Source: Oculina patagonica
Lineage: Eukaryota
DNA: 64,000 nucleotides
Direction: 5' to 3'
Assembly: GCF_052425735.1 (NCBI RefSeq)
Contig: NC_135759.1
Location: forward strand, 23,808,001-23,872,000
The first letter of the stretch is position 1. Every line of letters starts with the position of its first letter. This document shows, piece after piece, positions 32,503 to 52,656 of this stretch. The position numbers and the translations under genes were made by a program. The notes under the pieces are model-generated. The model was not told where the DNA came from. It did no database searches and saw nothing but the letters and a program-made list of their open reading frames with translations.

Positions 32503-35500
32503 TTAGGCCACTTTCTTGGAATTAAGTGGGTCGTGTTTAATTTCAACAAATCCTGGCTTGGACTTTCTTGGAGGGACGATTTTAGCGTAGGAAAACTGTG
32601 AAGGAAATGAAATAGCATTTAAAATGTGCGCTATAGAAGAAGTATCTTATGCAAGTACTTACTATACTCTTGAGGGTTGATATGATGTTAACAATACCAT
32701 AGATGGTGGATATTAAATAAAATTTGTCGATATAAGAAATATGGTGCTGAACGCATAGTAAGGGGAATCAACTGGCAGGGTTATATTTTACCTCATGTGC
32801 ATAATCAATCCATGATCCAGTGTTGACGTAAATCAATTTGCCGATTCTGCTTTTGATCGTCTCCCCGCGCCATTCGTGAGTGTGACCCAGTACTACCACG
32901 TCCTCGCCACATCGAGACAAAAGGTCTTTAAAATCACCCAGAACACCTTTCAGCAGACTGAAGGCATCACTCGAACCAAACTATATAAAAACCGCAAAAA
33001 ATAAATACTTTATGAACATTGCTCAGAAGGTTTTTTTCCGGGTTCTTCGTTTTTTCTTCCTCCTTAAAAATCAACAGTTCCGAATTCCATTTCGATCTGG
33101 AAACAGTGGATGACGAGCCACAGCGTGGATACNNNNNNNNNNNNNNNNNNNNNNNNNNNNNNNNNNNNNNNNNNNNNNNNNNNNNNNNNNNNNNNNNNNN
33201 NNNNNNNNNNNNNNNNNNNNNNNNNNNNNNNNNNNNNNNNNNNNNNNNNNNNNNNNNNNNNNACCTTGGGCTCCAGATCGGGTCGTATACGACCCGAACA
33301 GAGAAGACACATCATGGTTTGTGTTATGAAGTACTAATAAGTGAGCTACGCTTCCAAGGCAGGCTTACATGAAGTACTAAATCGACCACGAGTAAATCCT
33401 TCGCTTCGACCGAGTTTCTCGCCACTTTTTTGCTATTTTCGCTCTGGCGTTTTGACTAGATTGCTGACCAGACATGGCGGAGCCGACATTCACAACTGAT
33501 GAAGTTATAGAGCAAGTGATTTGGATGAAAATGACTGCGAAAAACAAAGTAGCGAAGAAGAGTTTGTTGGAGACTTTCAAGATGAAGACGGCCACGTGTT
33601 TGTGTTACCAGCAAGGCATAATATCCCAGCTCACGAAAGAGAACCTGCTCTCTTCATGGACCACGAAGTGAACTCGGTAGATTGACTAGCAATTGCTTTA
33701 TTGTTGTACATTTCAACTGCATTTACATTTATACAACAAAAGACAGTTATACCTGCCAACTCTCACGCCTATGAGTTGAAAACTTCGATCTCACGCCAAC
33801 TCACGCTTACGAACCAATTTCTCACGCCAAGTCGAAAAATGTGAGTTATTACAACCATAAATGGCATGCTTTCCAAAAATATGTGAACTCAAACCAATGT
33901 GAGAAACGAAAACTCCATGTAAAATAAGTTTATGATGATACTTTCCCCGAAATCTCAGAGTTTTGATAAGAAAAGCTTTGAGAATGTGGTCGTGTTTAGC
34001 CAAACAAGTCTTTAGCTAAAATAGAATTCAAAATGGCTGCCATACCACATTTGCAAGAACTTAGACTTTGTGAGGATATTATTGATAGTTTTTCTTGAAG
34101 CTTTCTGAAAAAGTTTTTTATGGATAAAGGATCAAATTTAAGTCAGGGAAGTTGTTATCTTAATTAAATGATAAGTTGCAAGAGTTGGTAAACTTCAAAA
34201 TTAATATTTTTTTTCTTCATAAAATTAATTTATGCACCAATTCTGTCAATCATAGACATTGACAAAATGTCGATGACCAAAAGTATTTTGGTATATTTAA
34301 ACTCCTTATTGTATTGGCTTTCAAAAATTATTCAGGGTTGACTAGGTTAGACTTCAATGAAGTCATGACATGATGAGGTAGCAGTATACGTAGGGATTTT
34401 CAGAAAAAAGTTCAGGTCTTGAGTTGACAGTACGCTTTCTTTAAACCATAGTTAGTACTAACTATGTTTAAACTAACGACCGACTTCTTCTGATAATATC
34501 CTCACATTATAAGCAGACAAAATAATCCATTAAATTTGGGGCAGTGTCTTGACCTACCTCCAAATTCTCACAACCAACATCAAAAACTTGTGCGGCTTCC
34601 AGTAAGGAGAATATGTATGACTGTTGTTAGTTTAAGGAATACTTCAGTTGTGGTATTTAGCTTAGTCTTTTACCTTCTCAACCATGCGTTTAAAGTATCT
34701 GGATTTTAGGAGATTTGCCATTTTGATAGACTTTCCTCCTTCCAAAAGAATGTGCTCATTCAGGAAGACATCCCTTTGGAGTGCAGTCTCTATCAGCGAC
34801 TCTGTGAATCTTCTCTGTGGAGATTTCTTTGCAAGCAACTCAATAATGGAGGAACCGATGACGTCACGCTGTAGCCCCTTCAGCATGGTTTGAGTAACGG
34901 AACGGAGAATCTGTACACCATAAATAGCAATATTATGCACTGCAGTTCTCGCTCTACATGTGTAATAATTGACATTAACGTGACACCGCGGCAGAACGTC
35001 TACGCATGCGCTGAATTTAGCACTTCCGGTCGCCTTTGCAGTCACTCAACGGGCTTCACTCGTCGACACTCGTCACGCTTTCCGTTCAAGGTCGATCATT
35101 GCCTACGTTTAGTGACTTTAGTTGTTTTGCTTCGTGAATTGCGGTGTTTTAATCTGCTGTCGTCGTAGATTACAAGCTAAATATGACCGAAACAATACTC
35201 GATAGATTTAGAAAAGGTAAGTCGCGGATTCACTAAGGTTTTGATCCTGAATTTGAGCAGTAGATGAGCTTTAATAAGCTTAAATTTAAGCTTATCTTTC
35301 ACACAAGGCGGGAAGGCGGAGTTTTACTTGCCAGTTTCACCTCATCGATTAACCTTGACTAAATTCATAGCTTTGATTATTTTCAGTTCTACATTTATTT
35401 AACCTAGTCGCTTCGTGTTTGTTTTTTGTTCAAAGGTATAAAAACTCAGTTTGATTACACCCGGCAGTGAGTTCCGATTTTTAATTATTCGGTTTTAACT

Positions 35501-38500
35501 TTTTGGTTTAAAGCAAGTTGTAAAACAAGTCTATGATTCTGCTTTTCCTTTCAGATTGAAAAGAGAGAACCGGTACGATAGTCTGAAAGTTTGAATTGGT
35601 AAACTGAACGCCATGTGCGAATCGCGCGTGGGGCAGCCACACGGACTGGAAATGTAGAAAAACGTCCGCCAAGTAGACGAATTTTCGACCTTGTGAGGAG
35701 GATTAAGAAATCAAATTGCCTTTGTCTTGAATTAAAACACATTATTAACTTGTTTTGCTTCTCGGCTAACAGCTTTCAATCCAGCAAAAACTCCAGGTAC
35801 TGTACGGGAGTATCGATCGAAGACTCAATTCATTCTTGTTAAACCAAGCAAACACTGAGCAAATGTTGTTTTCTTTCTTGTTTTGTGACTTTTTTCTCAG
35901 TGAAGGCAAGATTTATATAACTCGCCTAAACCTGAAAGTTCAGTGGTTCTTTATTTTGATTTATGTAGTTTTTCTTTCTCCTTTGTCGCACTTAAATATG
36001 CCAGCAATTTAAAGCGGGAAAAGTAATAGAAACCGTGAAAACGAATTGCCGCTGTCGACTGTCGAGCGCTAGCGACCTGCAAACTTCAAGCATCATTTTC
36101 AACGTTAGTGCAAGCAGGAAACCCCATGGTGCAAAAGTATGAAGCTACAAAAATAAATAAACTTTTGAAAGAGACCATTCTTTTCCTTAAGTTTCTTTGC
36201 TATTTCTTAAGTTTTGTGTTTAAACTTCGCGCAACGGGAATTTTGTATTTACGCGACTGGATTACATAGTCAACCGGAAATACAAAACTGACCGGATGTT
36301 AATTTCCCACCCACCCATGCGCAGTGTGTTCTGCCGCGGTGTCCATTAACGTAGGATTACGAATCGAAGCGGAAACTTCAACTTTATTCTGATTAAAACA
36401 TTGTAGTTATTTTGGAATGAGTATTTTAAATAGTTTGCAACATGTGTGCTGTCAGATGCCAAAATCCGAGCGCCTAGTATTTTGGTTTATAAACATAGCT
36501 AAAGCATTTTCCATACGTTTTTGGGAACGAAAAAGCTCAGCAAACAAAACATGAAAGGCGTATTTGGACAGTGATGCAAAACCACACCCATTACTATCGA
36601 TTATTCCACGAGCGCGCGTTTAATGTGAACTGGTAGATAACCAATAAGGCGCGTAACACCGAGCTGGCTATAATCCTCTCTTATTCTTGGTAAATCGCAA
36701 GACCCCATAGTTTTTATCCTTCACACGTCCTTAATAAGGTTTTCAACTCGATAGCATCGCCGTCTTTAACATAGATCATTTTGAATTTTAGAGTTTCACG
36801 TCACACGACATCAAAAATGGCGGCCTGAAGGCTGTCACGTAGGCTTAAAAAATGCCTCATCCTGTGATTTTTAACAACCTGAACATTTGAGGTTTTGTGA
36901 AAAGTGTTTGAATGTTTACTGAGTGAACTGACCGCTTTTTGTAGCAGAAGTGAACTCCAGATGTTTCATTGATTTCCGGCCGCCAAGTTGGTGCCCCACA
37001 GCATGGGCACCAACATGGCGATTTCAAACTGTGCTCTCTAAATTTGTGTGGAACATTTTGACGGATAACTCGACTACTGAATACCGTACAGACCTGAGCC
37101 TTGGACAAGTAGTTTATCTAGTAATTTTCTACAACCTGTACTATTCTTGATTTTCTTAGACTCAATAGTTTTGGATTTTTTTGCGGCGCGACAGATGCGT
37201 GACACTGAAAACCGCCTATCTAACAAGCGCAAGTAGAATAATTGTTTCAATTAAAACAACCGGAAATGGTAGCGCTGACAAGTATCACAAAATCAACCCA
37301 GAAATAGAAATGTAACTCACCTGCAGTACTCCAACCATTAATGTGTCAGACGTGGCAGCTGCACGTGCAACGTAATAACCAGTAGGCTTGCCGCATAGCT
37401 TGTCACTGGGTTCTGTCACGGAGTAGGAATTGAAGACATCCCAGTCATGGCCATGCGCAAACCGCACCCGATACTGTTTTCCATCATCGCTATTGATGAC
37501 GTAGATGAGAGTTCCTGGTATGAACTCTACGTTGGGGCCAAACAGATCTCGGACTGTCCCGGCGTCCATTTCGTGGTCATGATCTCCCCGGATGTAGAAA
37601 ACGTTGACGTCATCTTCTTCGGCCATCCTTCGAACGGAGCTGATGAATAGAGAGCAAACTTCGTTCTGCTTCCATTTGGCCTTTCGTTCGTCATTCGATG
37701 GTGGAGAAACAGTGAAAGGATCCAGCCACATTTCAAAGACATCGCCAAGTAATATCAGCGTATTGAGAGAATCCTTAAAACAAAAAAGAGACAAATTGAC
37801 AACAGCGTTATCGTTTTTCATCATATCATGCTCATCTTAGTCATTTTAATCATTACAATTCTTATCTTCATCGCCATCATCATCATCATCATCATCTCAT
37901 CATTCTTTTTCCAAACTAGAAACCAGAACTTAATTGATCTGTGAACGAAACCTTCCTCTCCTGTATTAAATAATTCTGATCATTGTTCTCTGTAGATGAG
38001 TTGGAGAGTATCTCTGGATCTTTTAGTGTATGAGGACATTATGTTGGTTACAACTTGCAGTTCACCGACCCGAAATATAATTACGAATGTTTGTTTTCTG
38101 CGTGGGAATATCTCACAATATTAAATAACCTCATGATATCAATTATTTTGTACTTACCAGAAAAATAATTTAATGCAAATATATTTCTGCCTACATGTGT
38201 ACATACAAAGCAATCACAAAGGAGAATATGAAAAGAGTATTAAATTTAAAATTTCGTTAAGTCTTGGTAATTTAATATAATTATGTTGTCACCTTTGCCA
38301 TGATTTCAAGCTGTTCAATAAATCCAACTAGTCGTTCCTTAATTCCTTCACTCCACTGTGAGTCAAGGTGAAGGTCACTCAAGCAGATGATCAGGTTTTT
38401 CACGGGATCATTCGGGTGTGGCATTTCACGAACAACAATTTGTTCCACGTCTGTGCCAACAGGCGGCTGGTAACTGTAAAAATGTAAAACGATAAAGAAA

Positions 38501-41500
38501 AGTAATAAGAGTGACATTAGCAAAGCGAGGTCGTACCTTAGGGCGATAGTATCCCAGTCCGGACCTGACTATTAGCTAATCACTGTAAATAGATAAGTAA
38601 GTAAGAAGTTAGAGCAGTTTTCAATTGAGTGTAGCATATAAAACCAAAACCAAAGTAATTACTCTGGCCAATCAAAAAGGACACAGACAATCCAGTAAAC
38701 CAGTCAAAACTCCAAGCAAATACATGTAGCCGGCACGAAGCGCGGGAAAACGTGCGCGAGCGAGTCACGATTGGTTTTGGTTTTACTCCTGATTGGCTGA
38801 GAAAGTGGCGCGAGATTTTTAAGCCAATCATTAAGCGTAGTAATGCAAAACCAAAGCAAACGCATTTACTTTCGACAACTCAAGTGAAAACCGCTCTAAG
38901 TCAGTCAGTCAGTAAGTTAGTATGGGAGGCAAGCGTTGCCGAGTGGTTTAGGGCGCTGGTGTTGTAATCCGGAGGTCCCCGGTTCAAGAACTGCCCTTGC
39001 CACTAGCTGGATTTGTTTCTCGGTTGTCCCGAGTTCAAATCCTCGACCACGCTTTGTATATAGCCAACTGGTCTGCCTCCTGCCAGTTGGGATTTTTAAT
39101 CTTGTTATGTTCAGTTTAGCTGTAAACTAGCTATCTCGTTGAGATATGAAGCTAAGTGCATGGCCACTATAAACATATATTTATTTATTTTTTTATTTAG
39201 TAAGTATGTAAGTAAGTAAGTAAGTAAGTAAATTCTTTATTTATAGATGAAATTTCTAAATACTGTGCAACACTTACAGATTTTTGGTCCTTTATCTAAA
39301 CTATAATTAACGAATTTTACAAGAATAAAAGGTTTACTGATGTACAGTTGTTTAACAAGATAGACACTACAAGGTTTAACTGTGTACAGTCATTTAACAA
39401 GATAGAAACTACAAATTGTAGTTGCTACTAGTTTCATATAAAAAATGTGCTAAAAACATATAACTGTTCCTTACGAAATTTGACCCTAAGAGTACAAGAA
39501 GAGAACCTTGTTTCTTTCATCATATGGCAAACTATTCCAAGTTTTAATAGCCTCAACCTAAATGATATATCACCTGCTGTTGGGCTATTGTACCTTGTAC
39601 AAATGAAATTAATTGGAAAAACTAGTATAACGTATCATATCAAGGTCTAGCCATGTACTTATACTTGTTAACTATGTTTGGAAAAAAGAAAATTTGTACG
39701 GCCAACTCGACTATCATATAACTGTAACCGCAAGAACTGACTGCAAGGGTTCTTTGTGTTTAGCTGATGGCTTACCTTGGTTCTTGCTCGAAAGTGTTCT
39801 TTTTGCTTTTTGCTTTAGACTTCCAAGCCAGAAAGCATTCTCTTGGCAGAGCAGCATTGACTTCTTCTAGAACTTCCTGAATGACCGTGTGCTGCGACTC
39901 GCTATCATCTTCAAAATCTCCGTATGTTAATCCCAGCTCTTGCGCAGTGCATGGGACAGAGGCTTTCATACAATCTACCAAGGGAATGCCATCAAAGCAT
40001 TAATATATATAGTGGCACCCGTGTCGTTTTACCAGTTCTCTCTATATCTATATCACTTGTATACTTACCGCGATTCACTATCTAAATTACCCCGACATGC
40101 TCCCGTCTGGCCTCGTAGCTCAGTCGGTAGAGCGTCGGTAGATCTAATCCCGAGGTCGTGGGTTCAAATCATAATATGTAACAGGACTACATGCTTGTCC
40201 AGTTTGGAAATAATTAGATTTACAAAATTCCTCTGGCAGCCAAATTGGTTTCGGCCTACGGCCTTGTCCAATTTTGGCTGTCATCGGATTTTTTTTTATC
40301 CAACTTTTTCCAAATTGGACAGCATGTAGTCAAATAACGTATACAAAAATCCTAACTTTACCTGATATAGACCGCATAGCCATAGCCTCCTGGGAGATAC
40401 GGGCTAGCTTGGCCTCGCTCAGATGCAGGTTGTCGTACGCATGTCTGTCTAAGGCCCTGAGAGCATGTGGGTAAACATCATACACAGCATTTTTGCCCAA
40501 TATCAAATCCATATGGCTATAATCGGGAATCTGGATCCAATCGTATTCTTGGTGTGGATGCGCTTCTTTCACCAGTTCGTAAGTGGTGCGGATGCTTTCC
40601 GGCACAAAGACTGTGTTGTTCTCACCTGGAACACATGAATAAATAAAGCATATCAAATATAAGCAACCGTCCTTGGCGTATACGAGCCTTTTCGTATTTT
40701 CTCTTTGACCGATATAAAGAGAGAATGACCTTTTTGGTAAATCCTTGATTGTGAATCACGGAAAGCAACAGACGTCCAATTTTCCATTTTTGCTCTTTTC
40801 CTATCTTATAAACCGAAACAAACGGCAAAGTTCTTGCGGCGTATGTGATTTGACGTTACTGCCCGCCTAGTCATGACGCCAAAAGGATGCAGACAGGAGG
40901 ATTTCATTAATGTTTGTGCCTCATGAATATCTGCGCTTAAGCTCTTTGGCTTCCGAGACAGGAAACAAGCGCTCGCTTTGGGTGATTAAAGAAAAGAAAA
41001 AATGTATTATGACAAAATTATACGCCAGGCCAAGGTTTGCGTCCGAGGCAACGATGAAGGGTGTGCAAAGTAATGCGGGCTCACCTACAAGGAAAGTGAT
41101 TGGGATGTCCAGCCGTCCGATCTTTTCCAAATAATCTGGAGACTTCAGCCGTTCTTTCTTGTCCACATCAGGTAGATAAATGTCTTCACCAGAATAAGAC
41201 ACGAATTTCTTCGCCTTGAATGAATTGCGCATATGCATCGCACATTTAGTGCTAAAGTAACCAAAGATCTCGTGGAGAGCTTCATGAGTCAAGGAATTCA
41301 AGTTAGCGTGTTGAAAAAGAGGTCCATTGATGAAGATTATTCTATTGAAGAAATAATTAAAAAAAACTCGGTTATGAGAGATACAACATTTAACAAAGGT
41401 TTGTCGCAAGAATCAAGATTATAGCAGACAATGACCTGTCCCTCTTTCTCATAGTCCATAGTAAGAATGGCTAAACACAAGCGGGAGTAAAAAGTTAATG

Positions 41501-44500
41501 CGCCGAAAAATTCACAGCCTGTCTTCCTATCACTTTGTTTCGTTTCTCTATATAAGGACTTAGAGAAAATATAAACTGCTTGTAGCAAAGAGCTGCAGGA
41601 ATTTAGAACTAAGATAAGTGTTTCCTTGACTTGATTTGAATATAGGTCAACGATAAGTTGAATACGCTGATTTGGTAAAATTCTAATTAATGACTTTTAT
41701 TTCCTAAATACGTTTTCTAATATTGCATGTATCATGTAGGCTGCTCGGATATGGAAAGATCATCTGTTTGAAGTCGTATATACTTAACTAATAAAACTGG
41801 TTATGATAATGGAATCCAATCTTGATATGATCATCACCAACGCTGTTTAAAAGACCATGATATTGAAAAAGAAGTAAGATGCCGGTCATCCTTAGAAATA
41901 AACAGGTTTACCCCCGGTGACACTTTCTTATATAAGCTATATAGGTACGTTCGGTGCCAAAGGGTTTGGTTTTTGAGAGTGAGAAAGAGTTACAATAAGT
42001 GCACCGCACCCAATCTTTCAGGGAGTTTCCCTCAGAGTTTAATTAACGGGGGGGGGGGGGGGCAGTTTACCTGTGACAAGTAGGGCTCTGGCATCTTTCC
42101 TTATATGGAATGACACTGTTACTGACATGCTTTGCGAAAGTATTAAACAAGTTGTCCATTACTTGCGCTGTATTTTCCGCGGATTCATCAATTCCAGAAA
42201 CTCCGAGCATCTCAAGCGTTCCAGGGATGTAGATTCCCAACTTGAATTCATTGAGCTGTCCGGTCATTGTATGTGCCGCCACATTGAAGGAGACCATGTT
42301 TCTGATTTTTCCCGTCGTTCTGCCAGTAAGAAGTGCTCCATAGTTTATTATAGACCCAATGCAATGTGCTACCACTTGAAGAGATTTCTGAATGGAAGAA
42401 AGTTAGCAGTCAAACACTGTACTTCATCTACTTTGGTTCAGAAGTCGATGTATATTGACAAGTTTTTAACGAAATTTTATAAAGATGGGGTACGTTCCAA
42501 ATAATTGAATAGTGTGAGAACATTATAAAGGTCGATCAACGACATTAGTTTTTAGCTATTCAATAACTAATGTTATCTATAAAATAACTATCATATAATT
42601 ATGCATCCACATCTCCTGTTCTGCGCAAGTACACGACCTAGTTTTGAACATAGTGCATGATAATGCAGTGTAGGGCAGTGCAGGTTAAGTTATTTAATAA
42701 GTAAACAGTTATGGATAACACCTTACCAGCGTGCTGATAAACCGATCATCAAGTGTTATTTCTTACCTGTTTTGTTATTTCCAGCACTTTGTCGATGAGC
42801 GCAGGGCAGTCATATTTAGCACAGTCGTCCAGTGTGTAGTCACTATAAATTGCCCAGGGCAGGTCACATGACCCTCGCCAATCAGCTAACCATACGTCAT
42901 ACCTAAAAATTGTTATTAAATGATATGTATTTAGTTAAAAGGATTTAAAATGTTTTCAAACTCGGAGCGCAAATAAAATTTAAAAAGCGTGAAATATTTC
43001 GTCTGATATCATCCAGACTTCATCAGTCACTGAGGTGGTGTTTTTTAAGATGAATGTTAAGAAGACATTTCACTGCCTCGGGGGAGTTAAAATTCTGTCA
43101 TAAATTGGAGCTAATTCAAAACCATTGTCTCTATTTAACAAAGGTTTTCTGAGTTTTATCTCAATGGCCTCTTTTACCCGGCGTTTAAAGGTGTTGATTT
43201 CGGTGGCTAACACTTTTGTCTTGCTTGTGTCTACCGAGTGGCCCTCCAGTCGACAATGTTCATGAATGGCTGACGAGTACCTCGACTGATGTTCTTTCAT
43301 TCTGGTTTCCAGTAAACGGGACGTTTCGCCAACGTACTCCTTGTTGCACTGTTCACATTGAACCTGGTACACAGTTCCGCATTTCTTTAGATTGGACGTT
43401 TTGTCCTTGACATGTACCAATTGCGACCTCAGGGAATATACGGGTTTATGAATAAGTGTGACCTCGTGTGACTTAAACGCTCTTTGAAGGCGTTCAGAAA
43501 TTCCTTTGATGTATGGCGCTGAAGCGTAGATTCAAACAACTACCCAGATTGGATGCTAACAATACCGCATTCCAAGTCTGGAACGAAAGAGCCCGAAAAA
43601 CGAGAAGAAAATCTACGCTTCAGCGCCATACATCAAAGGATGTCAACAATCACATTTCTAAACACCATCGACTTACTAACCACAAAATCGACTGGGACTC
43701 TCTGAATGCTTAACCTACAGTACTAACTATTTTAAAGATCTGGAAAGCTGGTTCACAAACTTAGAACAGACGCCTATCAACAGACGACATCAACAGAACC
43801 GACAAACGGAACGCAAACAAAACGACTTAATTTGACATAACAATAAACGAATCGAAAGTGACCAATTACTGTTGACAAACTTTACACGAGTCTTACTGCC
43901 AATAACATCACGGCTAAACTGACCAATCAACTTCAACGGACCGGACTTATAACAACATCGACTGACAACAACGTTTCACTTGACTCTGAAGTTGACATCC
44001 GCTCAGGTTGTCGAAACGTCAGTCACGAACAACAGTTCTTTTGAGAACTACTCTCACCCGGACGATCACACTATACGAACTTTTGTTATCATTATCAGCA
44101 ATTTAAACCCCTAAGCGAGACGACGATAATCCGCGTCCTTTCCTTGGGCTTTTCTTCCCCCGATTATTCCAGATATCACGAAAAACCTCATCTAAAGATT
44201 ATTCACTTCAGTCGATAAAAATCGGAATTATCTTACCTGTGTTGCACTAGGTACTCAGTCAAGTTGGGCTCAATAGTGTCCAGATTATAATTGCCCCTGC
44301 TCATTGCAAGGCCGTGAAACAGGATAACGGGTCCTTTGGTTCCTCCTTTGTATCGAGTCAGTTTTAGCTCAACCTGTAAAACAAATCAGATCAGTCTGGT
44401 AACTTAAACTGGTGTTTGTGAAGCACAAAGTTTAAAGTTCATAAAACTAATAATAATTCACTTTACTTTTTCCAACGCACCTTTTTATGACATTTCCGCA

Positions 44501-47500
44501 CCTGGCAATTTTAGCTTCAGGAATAAGATTCTTAATTTTGGTTGTATCTCAGTTTTAAATCTAAAAATAGTTTTAAATCTAAAATATGATACTTTAATAA
44601 AGTATCATTTTCTTAACATTTTAAACTATTCATTTATGGGATTTCGAAACAAAAGAGGGAAGAAACAGCTACTAATTCCAGAATTCAGTGACATATCCGA
44701 GACTTTGATTTAATTTCGGTTCAGTTCGTGATCTCCAGAATGATGAAGGTCTGGTTAAGTGCTACCAGCGATCTAATTGCACCGAACAAAGTTAAAAGCT
44801 TATTTAAGAAGTGTGTTAGACAGTAGTCAGGTAGTCATAAAATGGCCTGTAAATGCCAAAAGAGCTTCTACTTTTCATCTGAAAGAAAAACCTGAAAATA
44901 TTCCCTGTTGATGTTCTGTTTTTACATGACGAATTGTTAGAATGACGTATTATTTTCTATTTGAACCCAGAGCTCCTGATCACAGGTTCATCTCGTTTCA
45001 TAAAGAGCGTACCTTGTCTTCTGTGACGCATTTGTACACCTCAGGGGTGGCCCCGTTCAACTGCAGGGGTCTTTTCTTCCTGATAGGAGCATTGGGGTTC
45101 AGCAAGTAATCTTTTGACGTCACAGGGCCGTATGTTTCCCAGATGGTTCTCGCAAAAAATGAGCCAAATCGTGAAATCCATTTCAATTTTTTCAATCGGC
45201 TCTTTGTGTTTGTCACTTCCAGCGTTGCCAGTTGCTTTGCAAAGTTTGGCAGCGAGATAAATAACTTCGCTCTTCCCACAGAATTCCCTCGGAACTTTGT
45301 ACCAGGATAGATCGTAACAAACAAAGTCGTTGTGTCGCTCAATCCAATCTCTCCAACATGATCTTTATGGATCAACTTGACGCCCTGGAAGGCAAATTGT
45401 TGTCCTTTGTGACCCGTGAGAATCATTTTGTAGACCATTTCTTTAGTCTCCACATTGTCGGCACTTTTACTAAACAGTTTGAACACGCCTGTTGAATTTG
45501 AATACAATAACTGTTAGGACAACTTGACAATGTTTTTATTTAAGTTGCTTGTGACACATACATATGAATAATCTTTTCGTTGTGTTCTTCTTGATCGACG
45601 CTTATCATATACCTTTTTTCCTTTTCCTGACACAAATGATTTTGAAGTTTACCTCATGATAACGACGACGTTGTTTCTTTGGAAAAGACATACGCATTGT
45701 CGTGTAAAAATCAAAATTCCATTCAATCTCATATAAAAAATACAATCTGATTAAAATTGTTTTTCTCGACTTTTATAACAAAACAACTTCAAAAAATAAC
45801 TGTTTTCTATTTCAGTACCTAGTATAAAAAGTACAAAAACCAAACAAACAAAAATCGCAAATAATTCGACTTAATTCAAATGCCATTATAATGGAATCGT
45901 AATTGGTAATTTTGCTCTTGATGATACCTCTGACATTTCTATGGATTATTTACTTACCCTGTGAAATAGTCATGACCCCTTCTGACAAACTCGGACAAGT
46001 AACCGTGCCAGAAATTTTGGCCATGTGAGCTGGATCCCAATCAATCATACGTTCAACGTCCTCACTCTCTATGGTAACTGTAAACTCACATGGTGAGCTG
46101 CTGTACTTGTCCATTGCAGGCTCAAAGTTTCCGACCATCTTCTCTGTGAAACGAATACCTTGTTTCTGCTTTTTAAATGTTCTGTGGTCTACAAAATAGA
46201 TTGCGAGTTCTGTAAATAAGTTTTGTTTCGATTTTATTAGAGTAGATTGGCATTGTATTACTATTTTTTATCTGATTGGCTAATCAGTGAAGCGAAAGAA
46301 AAATTTTCGATGTTAATTGGTGAGTGTTATACAGTGTAATGTAAAATTAACTACTTAAAAAGTAGTATGAAGAGCGTCATTTTCTCGCAAGCCTGAAATA
46401 GCAATTGCTCACCGCTAATCGAATTGTGATGAAAAAAAATCTGGGAAAGGCAAGTGTGTGAGAAGAAGACAGATGTGACTTATTTCTTTAATTTATAATA
46501 ACAATAATTAGAACAATTAGAACAAAAAAATTTCGTATCAGATTGGTTCTTAGCACGCAATCTTTCTTCACCAAATTGGAGCGAGCAGCTTAGTGTCCAG
46601 TATGTAATGACTGAAATACTCCTTTTAGATATTCCTCAAACCTTGCAGAAACGGATTTTTCACAGTTAGGGTGCGTTTCTTTGGGAAAAATCCGAATCCG
46701 GATTCTTGATCCAAAAACGGATTTTGCGTTTCTTTACCTATATCCGAAAATGGATTAATCTTGGATCAATGATCTGAAGAATCCACACTTCGAGTGGATA
46801 CATCAGATCGTATCTGAATCCGGATTTTTAGGATTCATGATCCGTGCGTTTCTTTGGGAAAGGATTCGAAAAAAGTACCTTGGCCCAGCGGTCTTTGCTG
46901 TAAAAATACAGGTTCGCTCTTTGTAAACACTGCCATACGGAAAGTTTTAGGCGGTTATTTCGATCAAAATACAAAAATATTTCACGATAAAAGGAAAAGG
47001 TAGCTTCAGATAGGTATGTAGTATCATTTTAAACGGGATACAGGTTTTCTAGAACAGCCACTGTGTGCCTACGGAAGTTGTATCCTTTTGAAATTGTCAC
47101 GAGTGAAATTTGCACTGATCATTTCGCAATCATTCTTGGCGCTCAGATGCTTTCTAGCCACATTGTGCTTAACACTAAAAAAGATCTACTTCGACGTGTG
47201 GTTTTTGAAAAAGATTTTGTATGCTTAAATTATTTTAGCTAGGATACATTCGACGAAATATAAATTTGTGCTAAAATTTATGTTCTGTGCGAAATGTGTT
47301 GACGGGGTTGTCATGGTAAAAAATCCGTTTTCGGATTCTTCGTTTCTTTGGGAGCAAAGTATCCGTGTGATCTGAGATCAATGATCCAATTTTGGATTTT
47401 CCCAAAGAAACGCACCCTTAATTTTGTCACTGAAGTCAAAAAATTGTTGAAAAGCATCACCTTTTTAGTTTTCATTTTCGAGGTTTGTAGTTGTGTTAAA

Positions 47501-50500
47501 TTCCTAATTGAACTAATCGTGACAACCAATTTTGTCTGTAATCAAACTCGTGATGAAACAAATCCGACTCGTCCGATTTTGTGTGTATGGTTAGAAACCG
47601 AATTGGATTCCTTTCAGTCCTATTATCATCCCTTATTCCACGTTCTTACCTAGAGGTATGAAAGTGTCATAGTCTATTATCCATCCTTCTCTCTCGGCCA
47701 TGAGCCTCATACAGCGTTCCGCCAGGCAAGCTATTGTCAATACTGGGTTGATGCCGACAGCTCGAGGGAGAATGGCTCCATCTACCACATATAAACCATC
47801 CAGGGGTTCACTTGATTCTCCTATGTGCGATATTACAATAGAAAAACAAAATCATGATTTCGTCCGTTTTGTGCCAAGTTGTCAGTTTGTACATATGCTT
47901 ACGGATCGTTCAAACCAGATAAATCAGTCACACATAGCTTAAATTTAAATATCTTAGCAACCTTTTGTGTTTGAAACCAACCTTCAAATACTTGTCCAGC
48001 ATGGTTTACAACAGCTGTCTGTCCAGATTCACCCATTGGACACCCACCCAATGGATGAACAGTGATGACACTTTTGCCCAACGCTTCTGTCCACGCGGGG
48101 TTCTTAACAAAACTCCCTCCCAGTCCTTTTGTCACTTTCTCGAGAGCCTCGTTTACACGGTCAAAGTTCCGGCCGCGTCCAACTTCTTTCCACTCGATGT
48201 CAATGTTGTCGCTGTTTTTGTCAAAAGTTATTTGCCCACCAGCGTCATCATGGCTCATACAGACAAAGGTGAGAGTGTTGTCCATGCCTTTATCTTGGAG
48301 CTCCTTAAAAAAGACGATAATAACAAAGATAGTTTCAAGCACACGGTTTAGAATGTCAACTGAATATATTGATAATATAGCACTTTGATTGTGTCATGTT
48401 TTTATTTTTTGAGCGTACAACTTCTGTTTGATGTCTGAAAAGGTTTAAGCCTCTCTTTATATATACCTAATTTCCCAATTGCTCCAAATTATTTTGCTCT
48501 GTCTACCTGAGCAACTTTTTCCATCTTTTCTTCACTTGGAAATTTGTCCACTCCTAACACTTTGGCGGAAACGCTGATTCCAACAGTAAAGGGTACGGAG
48601 CCTATTGAAGGAAGATTCCCGTCTTCGATAACAAAGTGATCTTTAAAGTTCCCATCCAGTGTTTTTCTGAAATCCATGACGGAGGTTATGGTAGGCCCAG
48701 GCGGTTCATCACTGTCGTTCTTCTTATCTTCTGTATCTGATTCTTTCTTTGATTTAATTCCAATTGCGTTCGTCTTTTTATCACCGTTGTAGCTGAAACC
48801 CAGCACATCTCCATTTGTAGTGAAGCGTTTTCCGACTTTATCTGAGACGTCGAGACCGCGTTCTTTTGAGCGAAGCAGGATTTTAGTTGAGCCTAGTGCG
48901 CCTGCGCCAAGAATGACGTGGGAAGCTCTGACGATTTGCTCATCGACATCAAAGCAGCCGGTGTGCTGTCTTCTGTATGACACTAGCCAATCAGAAGAGT
49001 CGCAGGCTTTCGTCACTGATATAACTTCCACCTGGGAAAGAAACATTTTATTTTGTTTAAAATTTTTGGCACTATTATTCAATGTTTGCTATATGCATGT
49101 GACGGATAAAATTATAATGAATAATTACAATCAGAAGCTTATTAAGTATTTTATATTACTTATCTTTTAGTGTAATATTTTTAGAACTGATGGAGTCTGT
49201 CACATTTGAACCTAATTAAATGACCTAGTACCGTTTAGAATCTTTTGCTTTGTTGTATTGTCTATTCTTATTTAATAAAGTTGTTTATCTATTTAATTTT
49301 TAGCTGTAACACACTTACTTTCAGAGCAATGATTTACAGCCCACTATATTTTGTTTGGAAATGACGTAAACAACTTCGATAATTTCATGAATAAAGTTTG
49401 TTACCTCAGTAAATATTTTCGCTCTATGAGCCTTTGCGTCTGGTAGGTAGTTCATGTTTAGTGTGTTCTTCGCACCAACGTTGCAACCACCGATACAATT
49501 TCCGCATGCAGTACATTTGGGCTGCGGTACTCCCACATGGTTCGCAGGCGTGTCTTCAAAAGTAACAAACAGAGGCGGCTTATAAAACATCTTGCCCGTG
49601 TCTTCAATGTCGAATTCACAGAGTCCTTCCTTCATTCGCTCCAATTTGTGTAACTTTGGGTAGTGATCAGGGTATGGGGTTGGCTTCAACATATCTAGTA
49701 CGTGCTGCCGATCGACGCTTGTAAAATTCTTGAGATCTTCTCTAAGCTCTTGTGGCCATACAGGATCACTGAAAACAGCAGGGTCGCTGTCAAGCGCCAC
49801 ATTTGCATTTATAAGGGACGTTCCTCCAAGTCCACACCCTTGAAAAACTGATACATTGTCACTGACGAAAAGCTCATAAAGATTTGATGACTTCCCTAAA
49901 TATAAAAAAAATGAATTAACGATCGATCCATCAATCAACTATATATTGTACACAAAAATCAGGAAAGAGCGTACTAGGCCATGTGGGACAAGATTGAAAA
50001 ACGTAAATTAGCGCATGTGTAGTAAAATGTATACTGGCGGCCTCAAAGCGGTCGTCACACCTGTGTTGTGTTGTCATCAGCCTTCAAACTTTTAAAAAAT
50101 GAAATTACTTTTAATTTGAAGGAAACTATAAATAATAGTTTTTTAAGTTATAAAAACACTAGTGAAGTTATAATATTTTTAAAATTAAAAAGCAAGGTTA
50201 AGAGTGAGAAAGAACAAGCTTGGAGAATTTGGCCATTTTTCTTAGAAAGCACAGTCTGTGACGTAAGCCCTTTAAGACTTTCAATCCGTGCCATAATTCC
50301 TTGGGACACCCGTTTTAACAATTGTAACATGACATTCCGTTTTGAATTCTCAGAAATGGAGAACCCCCTGCCCCCAAAACCAGTTTTGCAAAATAGACGG
50401 CAACGGAAGGCATTGTTTATTTCAAGGTACACAACATTGTTATGGGGCAGGGGGGGTAATTGTTGATTTTTTTTCCCTGTTTTTAGTGTAAAAAACAGCA

Positions 50501-52656
50501 AGTGTTCCAACAATTGTGGCGTAGATTGTTGCTTGGTCAAAATTAACTCCTTGTTCATTGCAATCGATAGTTCGCTGCTAAAAAGTTAGCAGTCCATACG
50601 TGTTGCAAACTTTATCATGTCTATAAGTATTCGCTTGTTCAAGCAAACGTTCACGGCCTCTCGTCTAAAAACTTAACTGTGCACTGTACACTGGAACAAG
50701 ACTAAACTAATAAAAAGACCGTATTCGCTTTTTGAAACTAAAGTTGAGTTCTGCAAGCTGTAATACTGTTAGTAGAAAACGACCTCTTTAGTGCCCCTAC
50801 ACGTAAGCAGAGACGTAATCCGTTATTGTTTTTGGTGAGTGAGCTTGGTATCCTTAAGGCCCTGTCTAACTTTGCTTTTATTAATGGGAGGATACGATGT
50901 TTTGAAGTATTTTCACTTATAAAAAAAACTCCTCAAGTGTCCGTTAACGATTTCAAAGTGTCCGTTGTCCGTCTTAGAGAGGTGTCCGTCTTATAGGGAA
51001 TTTCGTTACAGTAAAATGACTGAAAAACGGTAGGGACTATAGCCAGGTGTCCGTGTAATGTAGGTGTCCGTTTTATTGAGGTGTCCGTGAAGAGAGAGTT
51101 TACTGTTCATCGAACCTAAATACACGACCACTATAAACAACATTTAATACTTTTTTTACATTTTACATTAGCGTATAATTTAGCGTATTATTAATTAGCA
51201 TTTGATGTGTTCAGGTTGATCAATTTTTATCCAATCTTTGTTCTTTCCCTTCACAATGTCAAATACCTTTATTCTCTGTCTTCCCTCCAAATGAAATCTG
51301 AAGTTCCTTGGAAGCTTCTGAGAATGTTTCGGGGAATTCCCCAGGCAACCACTCCTTGCCTCGTTCCAAAACACAAACTTTCTGTCCTGCTCTGGCACAG
51401 CGACTGGCAGCAATGGAACCCCCGTACCCAGATCCCACGATCACTACATCATAGTGAGGCTTGATTTCGGATGGCGGAGAGGATAAGCGAGGAAACTGTG
51501 GCGGTTGCTGTTAAGAAAATTGTTGGTCAGTAGGTCATGATAAAATGCAGGCCTAAGGTTATTTTTGTTAATTGAGAAAAAAAACAGTAAGGATTTAAAA
51601 GCAGTTATAATCAGTTGTCTGTTATCCGGCTAATGAAGGAGAAAAATTTGTTATCTTTACGATCAAATAAGCAGAATAATTTTAATAAGTGGTTCAGTAC
51701 AGGAAATAAATTATGCATTGTTATTCTTTCTTTTCATTGAAATATTTGTTTTTCTTTAAATCACAGTAACACAAGCTCAGGCTAATTTAGGTTCAAATCT
51801 TCTGAGCACTTGAAAAAAATAAGATTGACCATTTTTCTAAAACTTTAACGCCTTTAACAAAAAAAAAGGTATTCGCCCAAGTGTACCGAGGATAAAAAAA
51901 AGTTTCATTCCGCAGTCACAACTCTTTACTGTAATTTTAACTGGCACCGATTGATTTTATGCAGCTAAGTTGTCAGAAATGGCTTTGCATTTGAATAAAA
52001 CACCATGAAAACTACAATAATTTTATGCTCAGAAATAAACATGTGGCGTGACTGTTGTCTGGCTATCTCGGTTTTGTATGAAATTAATTTTTCTCCAAAG
52101 ATCTGTAAACCGAGACTTGAAATCGAAGTTCATTGTCTCCCAACATTTTTAAAAAGCCTTTTCTATATAAAAAAGTTAAATGTGACCGAATTTGTACAAG
52201 TATAAAATTTATATATCGCCACTTTCGTGACTGCCTTGGGCAATTGATTGACGTTCATAACTAAATCAAACGATGTTTTGAAAAAAACCGGGTCTACTTA
52301 CACACTGCACTGAATTCGGTTTTAACAAATCACAACAGATAAAAGCCCTTACTGCGTGCAAAAAGGATTTTAAAAACGCCGAAATAAATAGATAATCTCG
52401 GAAAATCCTTGTTTAATATTATTATCATATTAACAACATAAAAACTCATTTTATTTAGTTTGCAACATTTTTTAACCGGACCAAAAGGATGGGCCTTGAA
52501 TCAGATCTCAGGCAATTGGAATAGGTATCGAGTAGTGTGATAGATAAAATTTGAAGTAGAAGTCAACATGATCGATGGTAGTTAATTGGTTTAGAAGCAA
52601 TGCAGTCTTACCTCTGCAAAGGGATTTTTGGAATGTGAAGACGCCGAGGTTCCCAT
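32503..52656 (-). CDS. Copy B (complete, 19 coding exons, ~1654 aa): GMC cholesterol-oxidase-like domain + linker domain + alpha/beta hydrolase + LpxH-like metallophosphoesterase
   Basis: Exons: 52612-52656, 51267-51507, 49405-49895, 48507-49031, 47982-48303, 47650-47820, 45958-46188, 45013-45488, 44237-44373, 42767-42902, 42071-42387, 41085-41341, 40362-40625, 39776-39974, 38293-38473, 37321-37773, 34674-34910, 32792-32980, 32503-32595. All are GT-AG with matching phases; the total of 4965 nt ends in TAA. Motifs: GSGYGG, CTACGNCIGGC, VHPLGGC, GINP, VAHCIGS, YSHMD, SDLHLD, LGDVFE, RGDHD, AHGHDWD, LGHTH, NTGSW. Confidence 0.88.
33133..33262. other. Assembly gap (130 N) inside intron 17 of copy B
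   Basis: Run of N. Confidence 1.
33263..33690 (+). mobile_element. piggyBac-like left end with a decayed transposase N-terminus
   Basis: Starts accttgggctcc, followed by the palindrome cgggtcgtatacgacccg and ATG MAEPTFTTDEVIEQV leading to an acidic stretch. The TSD is hidden by the gap. Confidence 0.4.
34982..36343. mobile_element. Non-autonomous Mutator (MULE)-type element
   Basis: Perfect 9-bp TSD CATTAACGT (34973-34981 and 36344-36352); TIR GACACCGCGGCAGAAC / GTTCTGCCGCGGTGTC. Confidence 0.8.
36733..37219. mobile_element. MITE-like element, family of 10373..10998
   Basis: ggttttca / tgaaaaccg termini and shared internal sequence. Confidence 0.5.
38610..38898. mobile_element. MITE (Harbinger/Tourist-like)
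   Basis: tta+gagcagttttcaattgagt ... actcaagtgaaaaccgctc+taa, with internal inverted aaaccaaaaccaa/ttggttttggttt. Confidence 0.7.
38924..39175 (+). mobile_element. tRNA-derived SINE
   Basis: A-box-like tgccgagtggtt and B-box-like ggttcaag, a second gagttcaaatcc, and an AT-rich tail. Confidence 0.75.
39200..39740 (-). mobile_element. 3' end of a CR1/L2-type LINE with a (TTAC)n tail
   Basis: Minus-strand EAIKTWNSLPY and the gtaa repeats at ~39200-39230. Confidence 0.55.
40105..40170 (+). pseudogene. tRNA-like fragment (SINE-derived), truncated by a ~170-bp TIR element at 40171-40345
   Basis: gtagctcagtcggtagagcg...ggtcgtgggttcaaatc with no 3' acceptor strand, followed by gactacatgcttgtccagtttggaaa / tttccaaattggacagcatgtagtc. 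Confidence 0.5.
42950..43640 (-). mobile_element. Penelope-like element fragment (GIY-YIG endonuclease) with an inverted 5' piece
   Basis: GTVYQVQCEQCNKEYVGETSRLLETRMKEH ... KEAIEIKLRKPLLNRDNG. 43502-43531 is the reverse complement of 43610-43640. Absent in the copy A intron. Confidence 0.85.
42989..43030 (-). ncRNA. Minimal type I hammerhead ribozyme-like motif of the Penelope-like element
   Basis: Minus strand: gtga CTGATGA a gtctg gatgatat cagac GAAA tatt tcac (stem I gtga/tcac, stem II gtctg/cagac). Confidence 0.6.
43643..44080 (+). mobile_element. 3' part of a second Penelope-like element, with a hammerhead-like motif at 43981-44025
   Basis: NNHISKHHRLTNHKIDWDS ... LESWFTNLEQTPINR; tgact CTGAAGT t gaca..tgtc GAAAC gtc agtca. 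Confidence 0.7.
46669..47417. mobile_element. PIF/Harbinger-type non-autonomous element
   Basis: 3-bp TSD TTA; TIR GGGTGCGTTTCTTTGGGAAAA / TTTTCCCAAAGAAACGCACCC. The empty site (cagttaattttgtcac) is present in copy A at ~6956-6971. Confidence 0.85.

Follow-up and report, generated by a model that had tools for sequence, protein, structure and literature searches.

A duplicated and expressed stony coral gene joins a GMC flavoenzyme, a cysteine hydrolase and an LpxH-like phosphoesterase in one polypeptide

The type I cholesterol oxidases, among them ChoA (1B4V) and the Brevibacterium enzyme (1COY), belong to the GMC superfamily of flavoenzymes, and ChoA is a secreted, single-domain oxidase of ~500 aa. 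The catalytic subunit of the flavin adenine dinucleotide (FAD) glucose dehydrogenase of Burkholderia cepacia is also a GMC protein, in which a 3Fe-4S cluster on Cys212, Cys218 and Cys222 relays electrons from the FAD (PMC6719666). Human gastric lipase (1HLG) and the lysosomal acid lipase, a cholesteryl ester hydrolase (6V7N), are alpha/beta hydrolases with a Ser nucleophile, and LpxH is a UDP-2,3-diacylglucosamine pyrophosphatase. Here we describe a gene in which relatives of all three kinds of enzyme are joined. It lies in 64,000 nucleotides of Oculina patagonica (assembly GCF_052425735.1, contig NC_135759.1, forward-strand positions 23,808,001 to 23,872,000), which we call the window, and all coordinates below are positions in the window. 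The gene, on the minus strand at 52656-32503, is a genuine nuclear gene of a stony coral, expressed and maintained by selection, and it encodes one multi-enzyme polypeptide. In order, this polypeptide consists of a cholesterol-oxidase-like FAD-dependent GMC oxidoreductase, a beta-rich module, an acid-lipase-like Cys hydrolase, a variable linker and a binuclear metallophosphoesterase that resembles LpxH and has an enlarged helical cap. We consider it probable that the whole is best explained as a duplicated multi-enzyme gene with lipid-coupled modules and a single eukaryotic origin of the fusion.

The gene has 19 exons totalling 4965 nt and encodes 1654 aa, with one terminal stop and zero internal stops, and all of its 18 introns (161-2410 nt) are of the GT..AG type. 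Dynamic programming over the open segments of the minus strand, which combined GT donor and AG acceptor scores with a continuous open frame, gave 18 of the exons. About 80 residues were absent between the HGH and GHTH motifs when homologues were aligned, which was the cue for another exon; tblastn of the homologue P0013 pointed at 34862-34677, and the best in-frame exon, 34910-34674 (79 aa), was taken as the nineteenth. The initial annotation, made from the sequence with no database searches, had spliced 19 in-frame exons into 1654 aa, including both terminal exons and the junctions 40362/39974 and 39776/38473, and our rebuilt model is identical. All the motifs that it quoted were found as well (GSGYGG, VHPLGG, GINP, CTACGNCIGGC, AHCIGS, SDLHLD, GDVFE, GDHD, HGH, LGHTH and NTGSW). 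The parts of the gene are as follows.

52656-52612, minus strand: exon 1, aa 1-15 (MGTSASSHSKNPFAE), with the predicted start codon ATG at 52656 and the donor GAG/gtaaga
51507-51267, 49895-49405, 49031-48507, 48303-47982 and 47820-47650, minus strand: exons 2-6, GMC flavoenzyme domain, aa ~16-598
46188-45958 and 45488-45013, minus strand: exons 7-8, beta-rich middle module of ~235 aa, aa 599-834
44373-44237, 42902-42767, 42387-42071, 41341-41085 and 40625-40362, minus strand: exons 9-13, alpha/beta hydrolase, aa 835-1205
39974-39776, minus strand: exon 14, variable acidic/basic linker, aa 1205-1271
38473-38293, 37773-37321, 34910-34674, 32980-32792 and 32595-32503 (stop), minus strand: exons 15-19, LpxH-like metallophosphoesterase, aa 1271-1654
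33133-33262: assembly gap (run of N) inside intron 17 (34673-32981), with the exon 18 acceptor 152 nt downstream

The 15 residues of exon 1 are the same in a tandem paralogue (at 14554-14510), and by our own reading the peptide fits a permissive N-myristoylation pattern. Across the junctions of exons 16, 17, 18 and 19, the proteins of Lingula, Branchiostoma and other family members and a homologue designated P0279 align with the coral model with no residues missing; in the alignment of the coral and P0279, FKRMVEK/FGSSDAF faces FKRAIDK/FGASRTF. Because homologues align without a gap over this junction, the run of N appears to conceal only intron sequence, and its two flanks appear to be parts of a single gene, with orientation and frame unchanged between them. 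Judging by homology, then, no exon is likely to be concealed in 33133-33262.

Exon 16 is present in RNA-type runs of several organisms, and we placed the RNA contigs of four runs on window positions 37200-42450, which hold exons 11-16. The contigs give depth on these exons and zero depth over unique intron sequence (37904-38255, 39312-39663, 40720-41071 and 41424-41951), so the signal is RNA and not carried-over DNA. The spliced joint between exons 14 and 15, 39776/38473 (CT..AC on the plus strand, equal to GT..AG), was seen in three runs, and the joint between exons 12 and 13, 41085/40625, in two. Since the first of these connects the linker exon to the first phosphoesterase exon, it ties the phosphoesterase exons to those upstream. 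Of the exon 13-14-15 junctions, where the initial annotation had proposed that RNA be used as a check, the second is thus observed, and the first, 40362/39974, is not among the 15 joints listed: the X1 contigs stop exactly at 39974 with 62 extra letters, and an X3 contig begins at 40362 with 25 letters preceding it. One low-depth X5 contig (record 28) continues 29 nt beyond the exon 14 acceptor, out of frame, and may represent an unspliced or alternative form.

Uninterrupted open reading frames (ORFs) in relatives cross the same boundaries. In a transcript-like Logan contig from run DRR169400 (L012), a 5'-open ORF with a 3' untranslated region of 770 nt after it encodes P0279 (772 aa), which is collinear with coral aa 904-1652; the junctions from exon 10/exon 11 to exon 18/exon 19 are gapless in the alignment except for indels in the exon 13/exon 14 linker. 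A second homologue, P0278, has a continuous ORF over coral aa 1147-1643, and P0023, a single ORF of 1814 aa on a 60%-GC metagenome contig, has GMC, Abhydrolase_1 and Metallophos domains in the coral order. The RNA joints and these ORFs together bear out the earlier proposal that three enzymes reside in one polypeptide.

The gene is duplicated, with the second copy running off the window.

14554-14510 ... 838-703, minus strand: exons 1-10 of the tandem paralogue (copy B), the remainder lying beyond the window start

Copy B gave tblastn matches of 83-100% identity to the coral model and is 93.6% identical over its exons 1-10. Its exons 1-10 have the same lengths as those of the complete gene (copy A), all the AG and GT sites are present, and no stop occurs in 925 codons. 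Over these codons the two copies differ with dS 0.205 and dN 0.031 (dN/dS 0.15), and the phosphoesterase exons compared with L004, a scaffold of a Tara coral metagenome, give dN/dS 0.25 (exon 16) and 0.21 (exon 17), which indicates that all parts of the gene are under purifying selection.

The flavoenzyme domain exceeds both Pfam cut-offs for the GMC superfamily: the exon 3 ORF scores 25.8 bits for GMC_oxred_N, where 23 are required, and the exon 5 ORF scores 27.6 bits for GMC_oxred_C, where 24.6 are required. The exon 2 ORF matches NAD_binding_8. It contains the FAD-binding motif GSGYGG (aa 40-45) and the pair His517 (in VHPLGG) and Asn566 (in GINP), which align, through the homologue P0150, with the catalytic His and Asn of ChoA. 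We counted conservation over 121 homologues: GSGYGG, Cys223, Cys226, Cys229, Cys233 and Asn566 are invariant, His517 is kept in 120 and Glu395 in 116. Of the 251 family positions with 95% conservation or more, the coral protein retains 208, among them GSGYGG, the four cysteines, His517, Asn566, His933-Cys934-x-Gly936-Ser937 and His1154. Among named families, cholesterol oxidase comes nearest (NCBIfam E 1e-33 to 1e-43; PDB 1B4V and 1COY, E 1e-15), but the cholesterol oxidase equivalog NF058674 has a cut-off of 850 bits, and the homologues that we scored against it reach 116 (P0023), 139 (P0102) and 147 (P0150).

The four cysteines form a CxxCxxCxxxC motif (CTACGNCIGGC in the coral). This cluster had been taken as typical of cholesterol oxidases; it is not a trait of the solved ones, as the aligned region of Streptomyces ChoA has no cysteines, and it is invariant in the coral-type family. 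When P0150 is aligned with the Burkholderia structure 6A2U (44-259 to 9-245), the family cysteines fall within a few residues of the 3Fe-4S site, although the match is weak (E 0.005). The motif and this alignment suggest to us that the domain is more likely a dehydrogenase with an iron-sulfur (Fe-S) relay than a plain oxidase. Phmmer searches of the PDB with single exons gave nothing significant, and neither did a PDB search with a 131-aa piece around the Cys motif, where the weak rows for an Fe-hydrogenase and ADAM17 are noise.

The initial annotation recognized three enzymes, which stand, and did not separate from them the beta-rich module of exons 7-8. This module matched no Pfam family. 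ESM Atlas models that match a near hit of the middle-module exon show a ~140-aa unit on bacterial proteins of cholesterol-oxidase-like, lipase-type hydrolase and patatin-like phospholipase types, and in an AlphaFold2 model of P0102, which we used as a bacterial proxy, the middle module has ~8 strands with a high predicted local distance difference test score (pLDDT). Our guess is that the module binds lipid or membrane.

For the hydrolase, the earlier identification of a Cys alpha/beta hydrolase was right about the Cys at the nucleophile position; we can add that the nearest folds are acid lipases and that the Cys characterizes the whole family and is not an oddity of the coral. The nucleophile elbow is G/A-H-C-x-G-S (AHCIGS in the coral), with Cys934 and Gly936 invariant in the 121 homologues and His933, Ser937, His1154 and Asp1156 kept in at least 95% of them. 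The coral hydrolase exons alone gave no significant Pfam match, with a weak Abhydro_lipase match on exon 9. Membership in the alpha/beta hydrolases comes from the relatives, with P0023 scoring 31.9 bits against Abhydrolase_1 (cut-off 25.8) and P0102 matching the same family, from the elbow and catalytic His, and from the proxy fold. In Foldseek, the P0102 hydrolase model (pLDDT 89.6) is closest to human and dog gastric lipase and lysosomal acid lipase (E 1e-14, TM score 0.66-0.67), with the runner-up fold behind by four orders of magnitude. The acid lipases proper have Ser in GHSQG and an Asp/His triad, and here all 121 homologues have Cys. The YDVWLxxxRG strand-loop resembles the acid-lipase motif. 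Polyhydroxyalkanoate synthase, tried as a model for the hydrolase given its GxCxG box and a weak NCBIfam match, ranked 17 or lower, five orders behind the acid lipases, and was rejected.

The hydrolase cap carries a further conserved set at aa 1022-1050 (exons 11-12, window ~42098-41282), where Cys1024 and Cys1029 are present in 121/121 homologues and Glu1022, His1042 and His1050 in at least 95%. This E-x-C-x4-C...H...H set may be a metal site or a disulfide.

The phosphoesterase exons contain the calcineurin-like motifs SDLHLD, LLGDVFE, RGDHDHE, HGH and LGHTH in order, and also NTGSW. Pfam Metallophos_2 matches exon 18 at E 2e-4 (21.7 bits, below the cut-off of 27), and four relatives, P0002, P0018, P0099 and P0102, exceed the Pfam Metallophos cut-off. 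A profile of 38 family members searched against the PDB found LpxH as its best match (E 1e-8). The model of the Lingula phosphoesterase (pLDDT 92) had LpxH for all of its 25 best Foldseek matches (E 4e-9), with TM scores of 0.54-0.61 by target and 0.37-0.42 by query; it has a helical insert at residues ~180-305 that is more than twice the size of that of LpxH. In the family this insert is ~125 residues, lies between motifs IV and V and is encoded mainly by exon 17; we take this to be the position of the LpxH lid. With LpxH as the nearest solved relative by both profile and predicted fold, the LpxH-like assignment made in the initial annotation is supported. Against the LpxH equivalogs TIGR01854 and NF003743 (cut-offs 190 and 134 bits), however, family members score 18-40 bits, so the domain is best regarded as LpxH-type by resemblance and probably not as a member of LpxH itself.

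We propose that the three catalytic modules work on one class of amphipathic lipid substrate. The hydrolase would form a thioester on Cys934, aided by His1154, and in this way take off or transfer the acyl group of a lipid ester, and the flavoenzyme would turn an exposed alcohol into a carbonyl by means of the His517/Asn566 pair. The electrons would probably leave through an Fe-S cluster on the CxxCxxCxxxC motif and not go directly to O2, and the phosphoesterase would cut a phosphodiester or pyrophosphate link, whether of the same substrate or of a neighbouring one. Wax esters, fatty alcohols or other lipids suit this chemistry equally as well as sterols. For the substrate, we rate at just under an even chance a lipid ester or alcohol other than a sterol (a wax ester or fatty alcohol, a glycerolipid or an isoprenoid alcohol); a steryl ester or sterol is possible with a smaller chance, and a non-lipid substrate seems rather improbable.

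The strongest competing explanation, the sterol version of what the initial annotation had raised, is a dedicated sterol line, in which the hydrolase frees the sterol, the oxidase converts it to a 3-ketosteroid and the phosphoesterase acts on a sterol-linked phosphate or a membrane phospholipid, the sterols being those of symbionts or diet. The best PDB and NCBIfam matches of the GMC domain are indeed cholesterol oxidases, the best folds for the hydrolase include a cholesteryl ester hydrolase, and corals are reported to be sterol auxotrophs that rely on transferred sterols (PMC6548501). On the other hand, the flavoenzyme scores are far from the cholesterol oxidase cut-off and the solved cholesterol oxidases do not have the invariant Cys motif; the acid lipases use Ser where this family uses Cys; no known sterol substrate requires an LpxH-like enzyme; and the family is abundant in bacteria of unknown sterol use. 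Weighing these, we find the dedicated sterol line somewhat unlikely and prefer the broader reading of modules coupled by a shared lipid substrate. A bolder version of that reading is an undescribed lipid pathway common to marine bacteria, protists and some animals, in which an Fe-S GMC dehydrogenase, a thiol-acyl acid-lipase-like enzyme and an LpxH-like pyrophosphatase pass one substrate along, and this we put forward as speculative and rather doubtful. If it were true, the coral gene pair would process storage or signalling lipids from symbionts or diet (steryl esters, wax esters or phospholipid-like molecules), and the two independent fusions described below would be a Rosetta-stone signature.

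Several observations weigh against our interpretation. The exon 1 start and the junctions of exons 13/14 and 16-19 have no read support among the joints listed for this copy, and part of the RNA contigs may derive from the paralogue, since the presence of a tandem paralogue makes it impossible to tell from which copy contigs of 90-97% similarity come. The Fe-S idea comes from a motif and an approximate alignment. In the hydrolase, no acid is conserved at the usual triad position (column 1118 is E, S, D or A), and the structural results for the hydrolase and phosphoesterase are those of proxies (P0102 and Lingula), not of the coral protein. All three nearest-known relationships are remote: the fold matches share 12-16% identity, and the scores fall well short of the curated cut-offs. 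We found in the literature no assayed activity or substrate for any member of the coral fusion family. Relatives of the phosphoesterase are also fused to other domains, namely a three-domain multicopper oxidase in P0065 (a Logan contig) and a Tectonin domain or two AbfB domains in P0112 and P0135, so the phosphoesterase family, which pairs repeatedly with oxidases and sugar-binding modules, is not tied to lipids.

A further point of this kind is codon 1395 (37582-37584), which in the window is GAT (Asp) where the family has the metal-ligand Asn of GNHD. It could be read as a sign that the gene is decaying or non-functional, for example with a dead phosphoesterase, as could the best-supported RNA differences shown for exons 15-16, of which 6 are non-synonymous and 3 synonymous (in contigs not assignable to one copy). 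We judge decay to be quite improbable. The 1654-codon ORF is intact and expressed under the purifying selection described above, and the remaining four phosphoesterase motifs are preserved. At the position of codon 1395, Asp, Ser or His is also seen in eukaryotic members besides the coral. Most of the RNA contigs encode Asn, with AAT in X1, X5 and most of X2 and GAT in part of X2 and in X3; the site is therefore polymorphic or not the same in the two paralogues, and the difference may be allelic, between the tandem copies or between strains. Asp is also able to bind metal.

The same architecture is found in several other eukaryotes, none of them characterized as far as we found. The initial annotation knew of no characterized animal protein with it, and we found none; the only named animal relatives, in Lingula, Watersipora and Branchiostoma, consist of the phosphoesterase alone (356-558 aa) and are entered as 'uncharacterized protein'. 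An exhaustive HMMER search with exon 16 gave 146 representatives. Besides P0023, a 54%-GC contig (L003) has three consecutive ORFs collinear with the coral protein, the first break between them being an 88-nt GT..AG intron in the right phase, which points to a eukaryotic microbe. The eukaryotic ENA assembly ERZ24900295 (35-38% GC) contains at least three paralogues with fewer introns than the coral gene, one of them a whole three-domain gene (L007) and two represented by collinear hydrolase and phosphoesterase exons (L010 and L011). A cnidarian-like assembly (L008/L009) covers coral aa 435-1653 at 46-82% identity, and its match breaks coincide with coral exon boundaries; with these boundaries shared by an orthologue that is ~60% identical, the introns are old. 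The Tara scaffold L004 matches exons 15-17 at 63-82% identity, and such relatives in a coral metagenome agree with a stony coral as the host. Sought within 10 kb upstream of the Lingula and Branchiostoma phosphoesterases, GMC exons were not found, but in both proteins the N-terminal part can still be aligned to the last portion of the coral linker, consistent with a fused ancestral protein. In a search of 5.8 billion proteins, the P0023 phosphoesterase region retrieved only P0023 and the Lingula domain retrieved 4 proteins, in a coarse word index that is a poor guide to range.

In bacteria, fusions of GMC and alpha/beta-hydrolase domains, whose occurrence the initial annotation had mentioned, are common: the two-domain family had 2298 matches at E <= 1e-10 among the candidates scored, overwhelmingly bacterial. 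P0102, a protein of 1686 aa on a compact bacterial-type contig, has all three domains in the order phosphoesterase, GMC, hydrolase. We built trees from quick searches; they are unrooted and have long branches, and the bacterial sample in the GMC-hydrolase tree consists of the nearest relatives of P0102 only. In the maximum-likelihood tree of 104 phosphoesterase domains, a clade with a Shimodaira-Hasegawa-like approximate likelihood ratio test support of 98 unites the coral, P0279, P0278, Lingula, Watersipora, Branchiostoma, the ERZ24900295 paralogues and P0023 with L003, and the P0102 phosphoesterase falls far from it, among Tectonin- or AbfB-fused proteins. In the GMC-hydrolase tree, both coral copies, L008, L007, L003 and P0023 lie on one side of a branch with support 100 and 61 bacterial proteins on the other. 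Its other domain order and its phosphoesterase from another clade indicate that the bacterial fusion of P0102 arose independently, and the trees argue that the same-order fusion arose once, in an ancestor that the coral shares with other eukaryotes.

The initial annotation had considered a horizontal origin with later gain of introns. A recent transfer from a bacterium to the coral would suit the overwhelmingly bacterial two-domain family, the patchy distribution in animals and the existence of a bacterial three-domain protein, but in both trees the coral groups with intron-bearing eukaryotic genes of the same order, the bacterial protein has a different order and a phosphoesterase of another clade, and the introns are shared with a cnidarian-like orthologue, so we consider such a transfer very unlikely and hold to a single eukaryotic origin. 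A deep bacterial origin of the modules is possible, given how large the two-domain family is in bacteria. That the model is an artefact splicing two adjacent genes, one for the GMC-hydrolase and one for a separate phosphoesterase, in frame only on paper is more improbable still, because despite the free-standing animal phosphoesterases without GMC exons upstream, the unlisted exon 13/exon 14 joint and the X5 read-through, three runs show the 39776/38473 joint, contigs stop right at the exon 14 acceptor and have 62 letters more, P0279, P0278 and P0023 read uninterrupted over the hydrolase/phosphoesterase boundary, at least five other eukaryotic loci have the collinear arrangement, and Lingula and Branchiostoma retain the linker end. 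Contamination is ruled out by the 18 spliceosomal introns, the transposon fragments in and between the copies and the tandem duplicate.

We also noted other features in and around the two copies. Between them, at 18908-21343 on the minus strand, is a long interspersed nuclear element (LINE) with reverse-transcriptase and zf-RVT ORFs. Intron 9 contains at 43073-43531, also on the minus strand, an open frame of 153 aa that encodes a GIY-YIG nuclease domain (Pfam E 1e-5), which we guess may be a fragment of a Penelope-like element. A repeat in intron 14 (38608-39135) reaches an RNA contig word depth of up to ~280,000, with many internal joints and loose ends, and is probably an abundant transcribed interspersed repeat; an Rfam scan of the window, this repeat included, found nothing. 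On the plus strand, an ORF at 53348-53749 starts ~700 nt upstream of exon 1 and has no Pfam match. Our impression is that its translation resembles the N-terminal part of a membrane transporter, and it may be a head-to-head neighbour that shares the promoter region.

Each module of the coral protein belongs to a known superfamily, and the combination of the three does not seem to have been described: we found no description in the literature that we searched on the three-domain architecture, on cholesterol oxidase in corals and on GMC with metallophosphoesterase. The bacterial two-domain family, with over 2000 proteins automatically labelled 'cholesterol oxidase', seems to be undescribed too, and that label is unsupported. 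The two independent joinings, together with purifying selection in the coral and several other eukaryotes, are a strong genomic hint that the modules serve one pathway. Corals store much of their energy as lipid esters, and the gene is a concrete, clonable candidate for the handling of acquired lipids in a coral. It also offers leads for enzymology in a possible Fe-S-bearing GMC dehydrogenase, an acid-lipase fold with Cys, and a eukaryotic LpxH-like enzyme in organisms without lipid A.

Compared with the known systems, the flavoenzyme shares with the type I cholesterol oxidases the GMC fold, the GxGxxG motif and the His (HPLGG)/Asn (NP) pair, and it differs from them in its scores (116-147 bits against 850) and its CxxCxxCxxxC motif, as well as in being part of a larger protein. 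With 6A2U it has in common the GMC scaffold, the His/Asn pair and a cysteine cluster at about the same place in the N-terminal domain, but the spacing there is C-x5-C-x3-C as opposed to C-x2-C-x2-C-x3-C in the coral family, and no cytochrome or hitch-hiker subunits were seen for the coral gene. The hydrolase matches the acid lipases in fold over ~360 columns and in having a helical cap, at 16% identity; the nucleophile in the coral family is Cys in GHCxGS instead of Ser in GHSQG, the acid at the usual position is not conserved, the cap has the C-x4-C...H...H set, and the coral protein, as far as its sequence indicates, is neither secreted nor lysosomal. The phosphoesterase has the LpxH order of motifs (DxH, GD, GNxD, H, GHxH) and a helical insert after motif IV, in a domain of ~370 aa compared with ~240 owing to its far larger insert, and it occurs in eukaryotes, with relatives fused to oxidases or carbohydrate-binding modules. 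Eukaryotes make no lipid A, and animals are not known to make UDP-2,3-diacylglucosamine. Over ~1150 aa the coral protein resembles the bacterial proteins of about that length annotated as 'cholesterol oxidase', for example in metagenome-assembled genomes of Acidimicrobiales, which have the GMC domain, the beta-rich module and the Cys-hydrolase at 30-36% identity. Unlike the coral gene, these are encoded by single ORFs and have no phosphoesterase, except for P0102, in which it is N-terminal.

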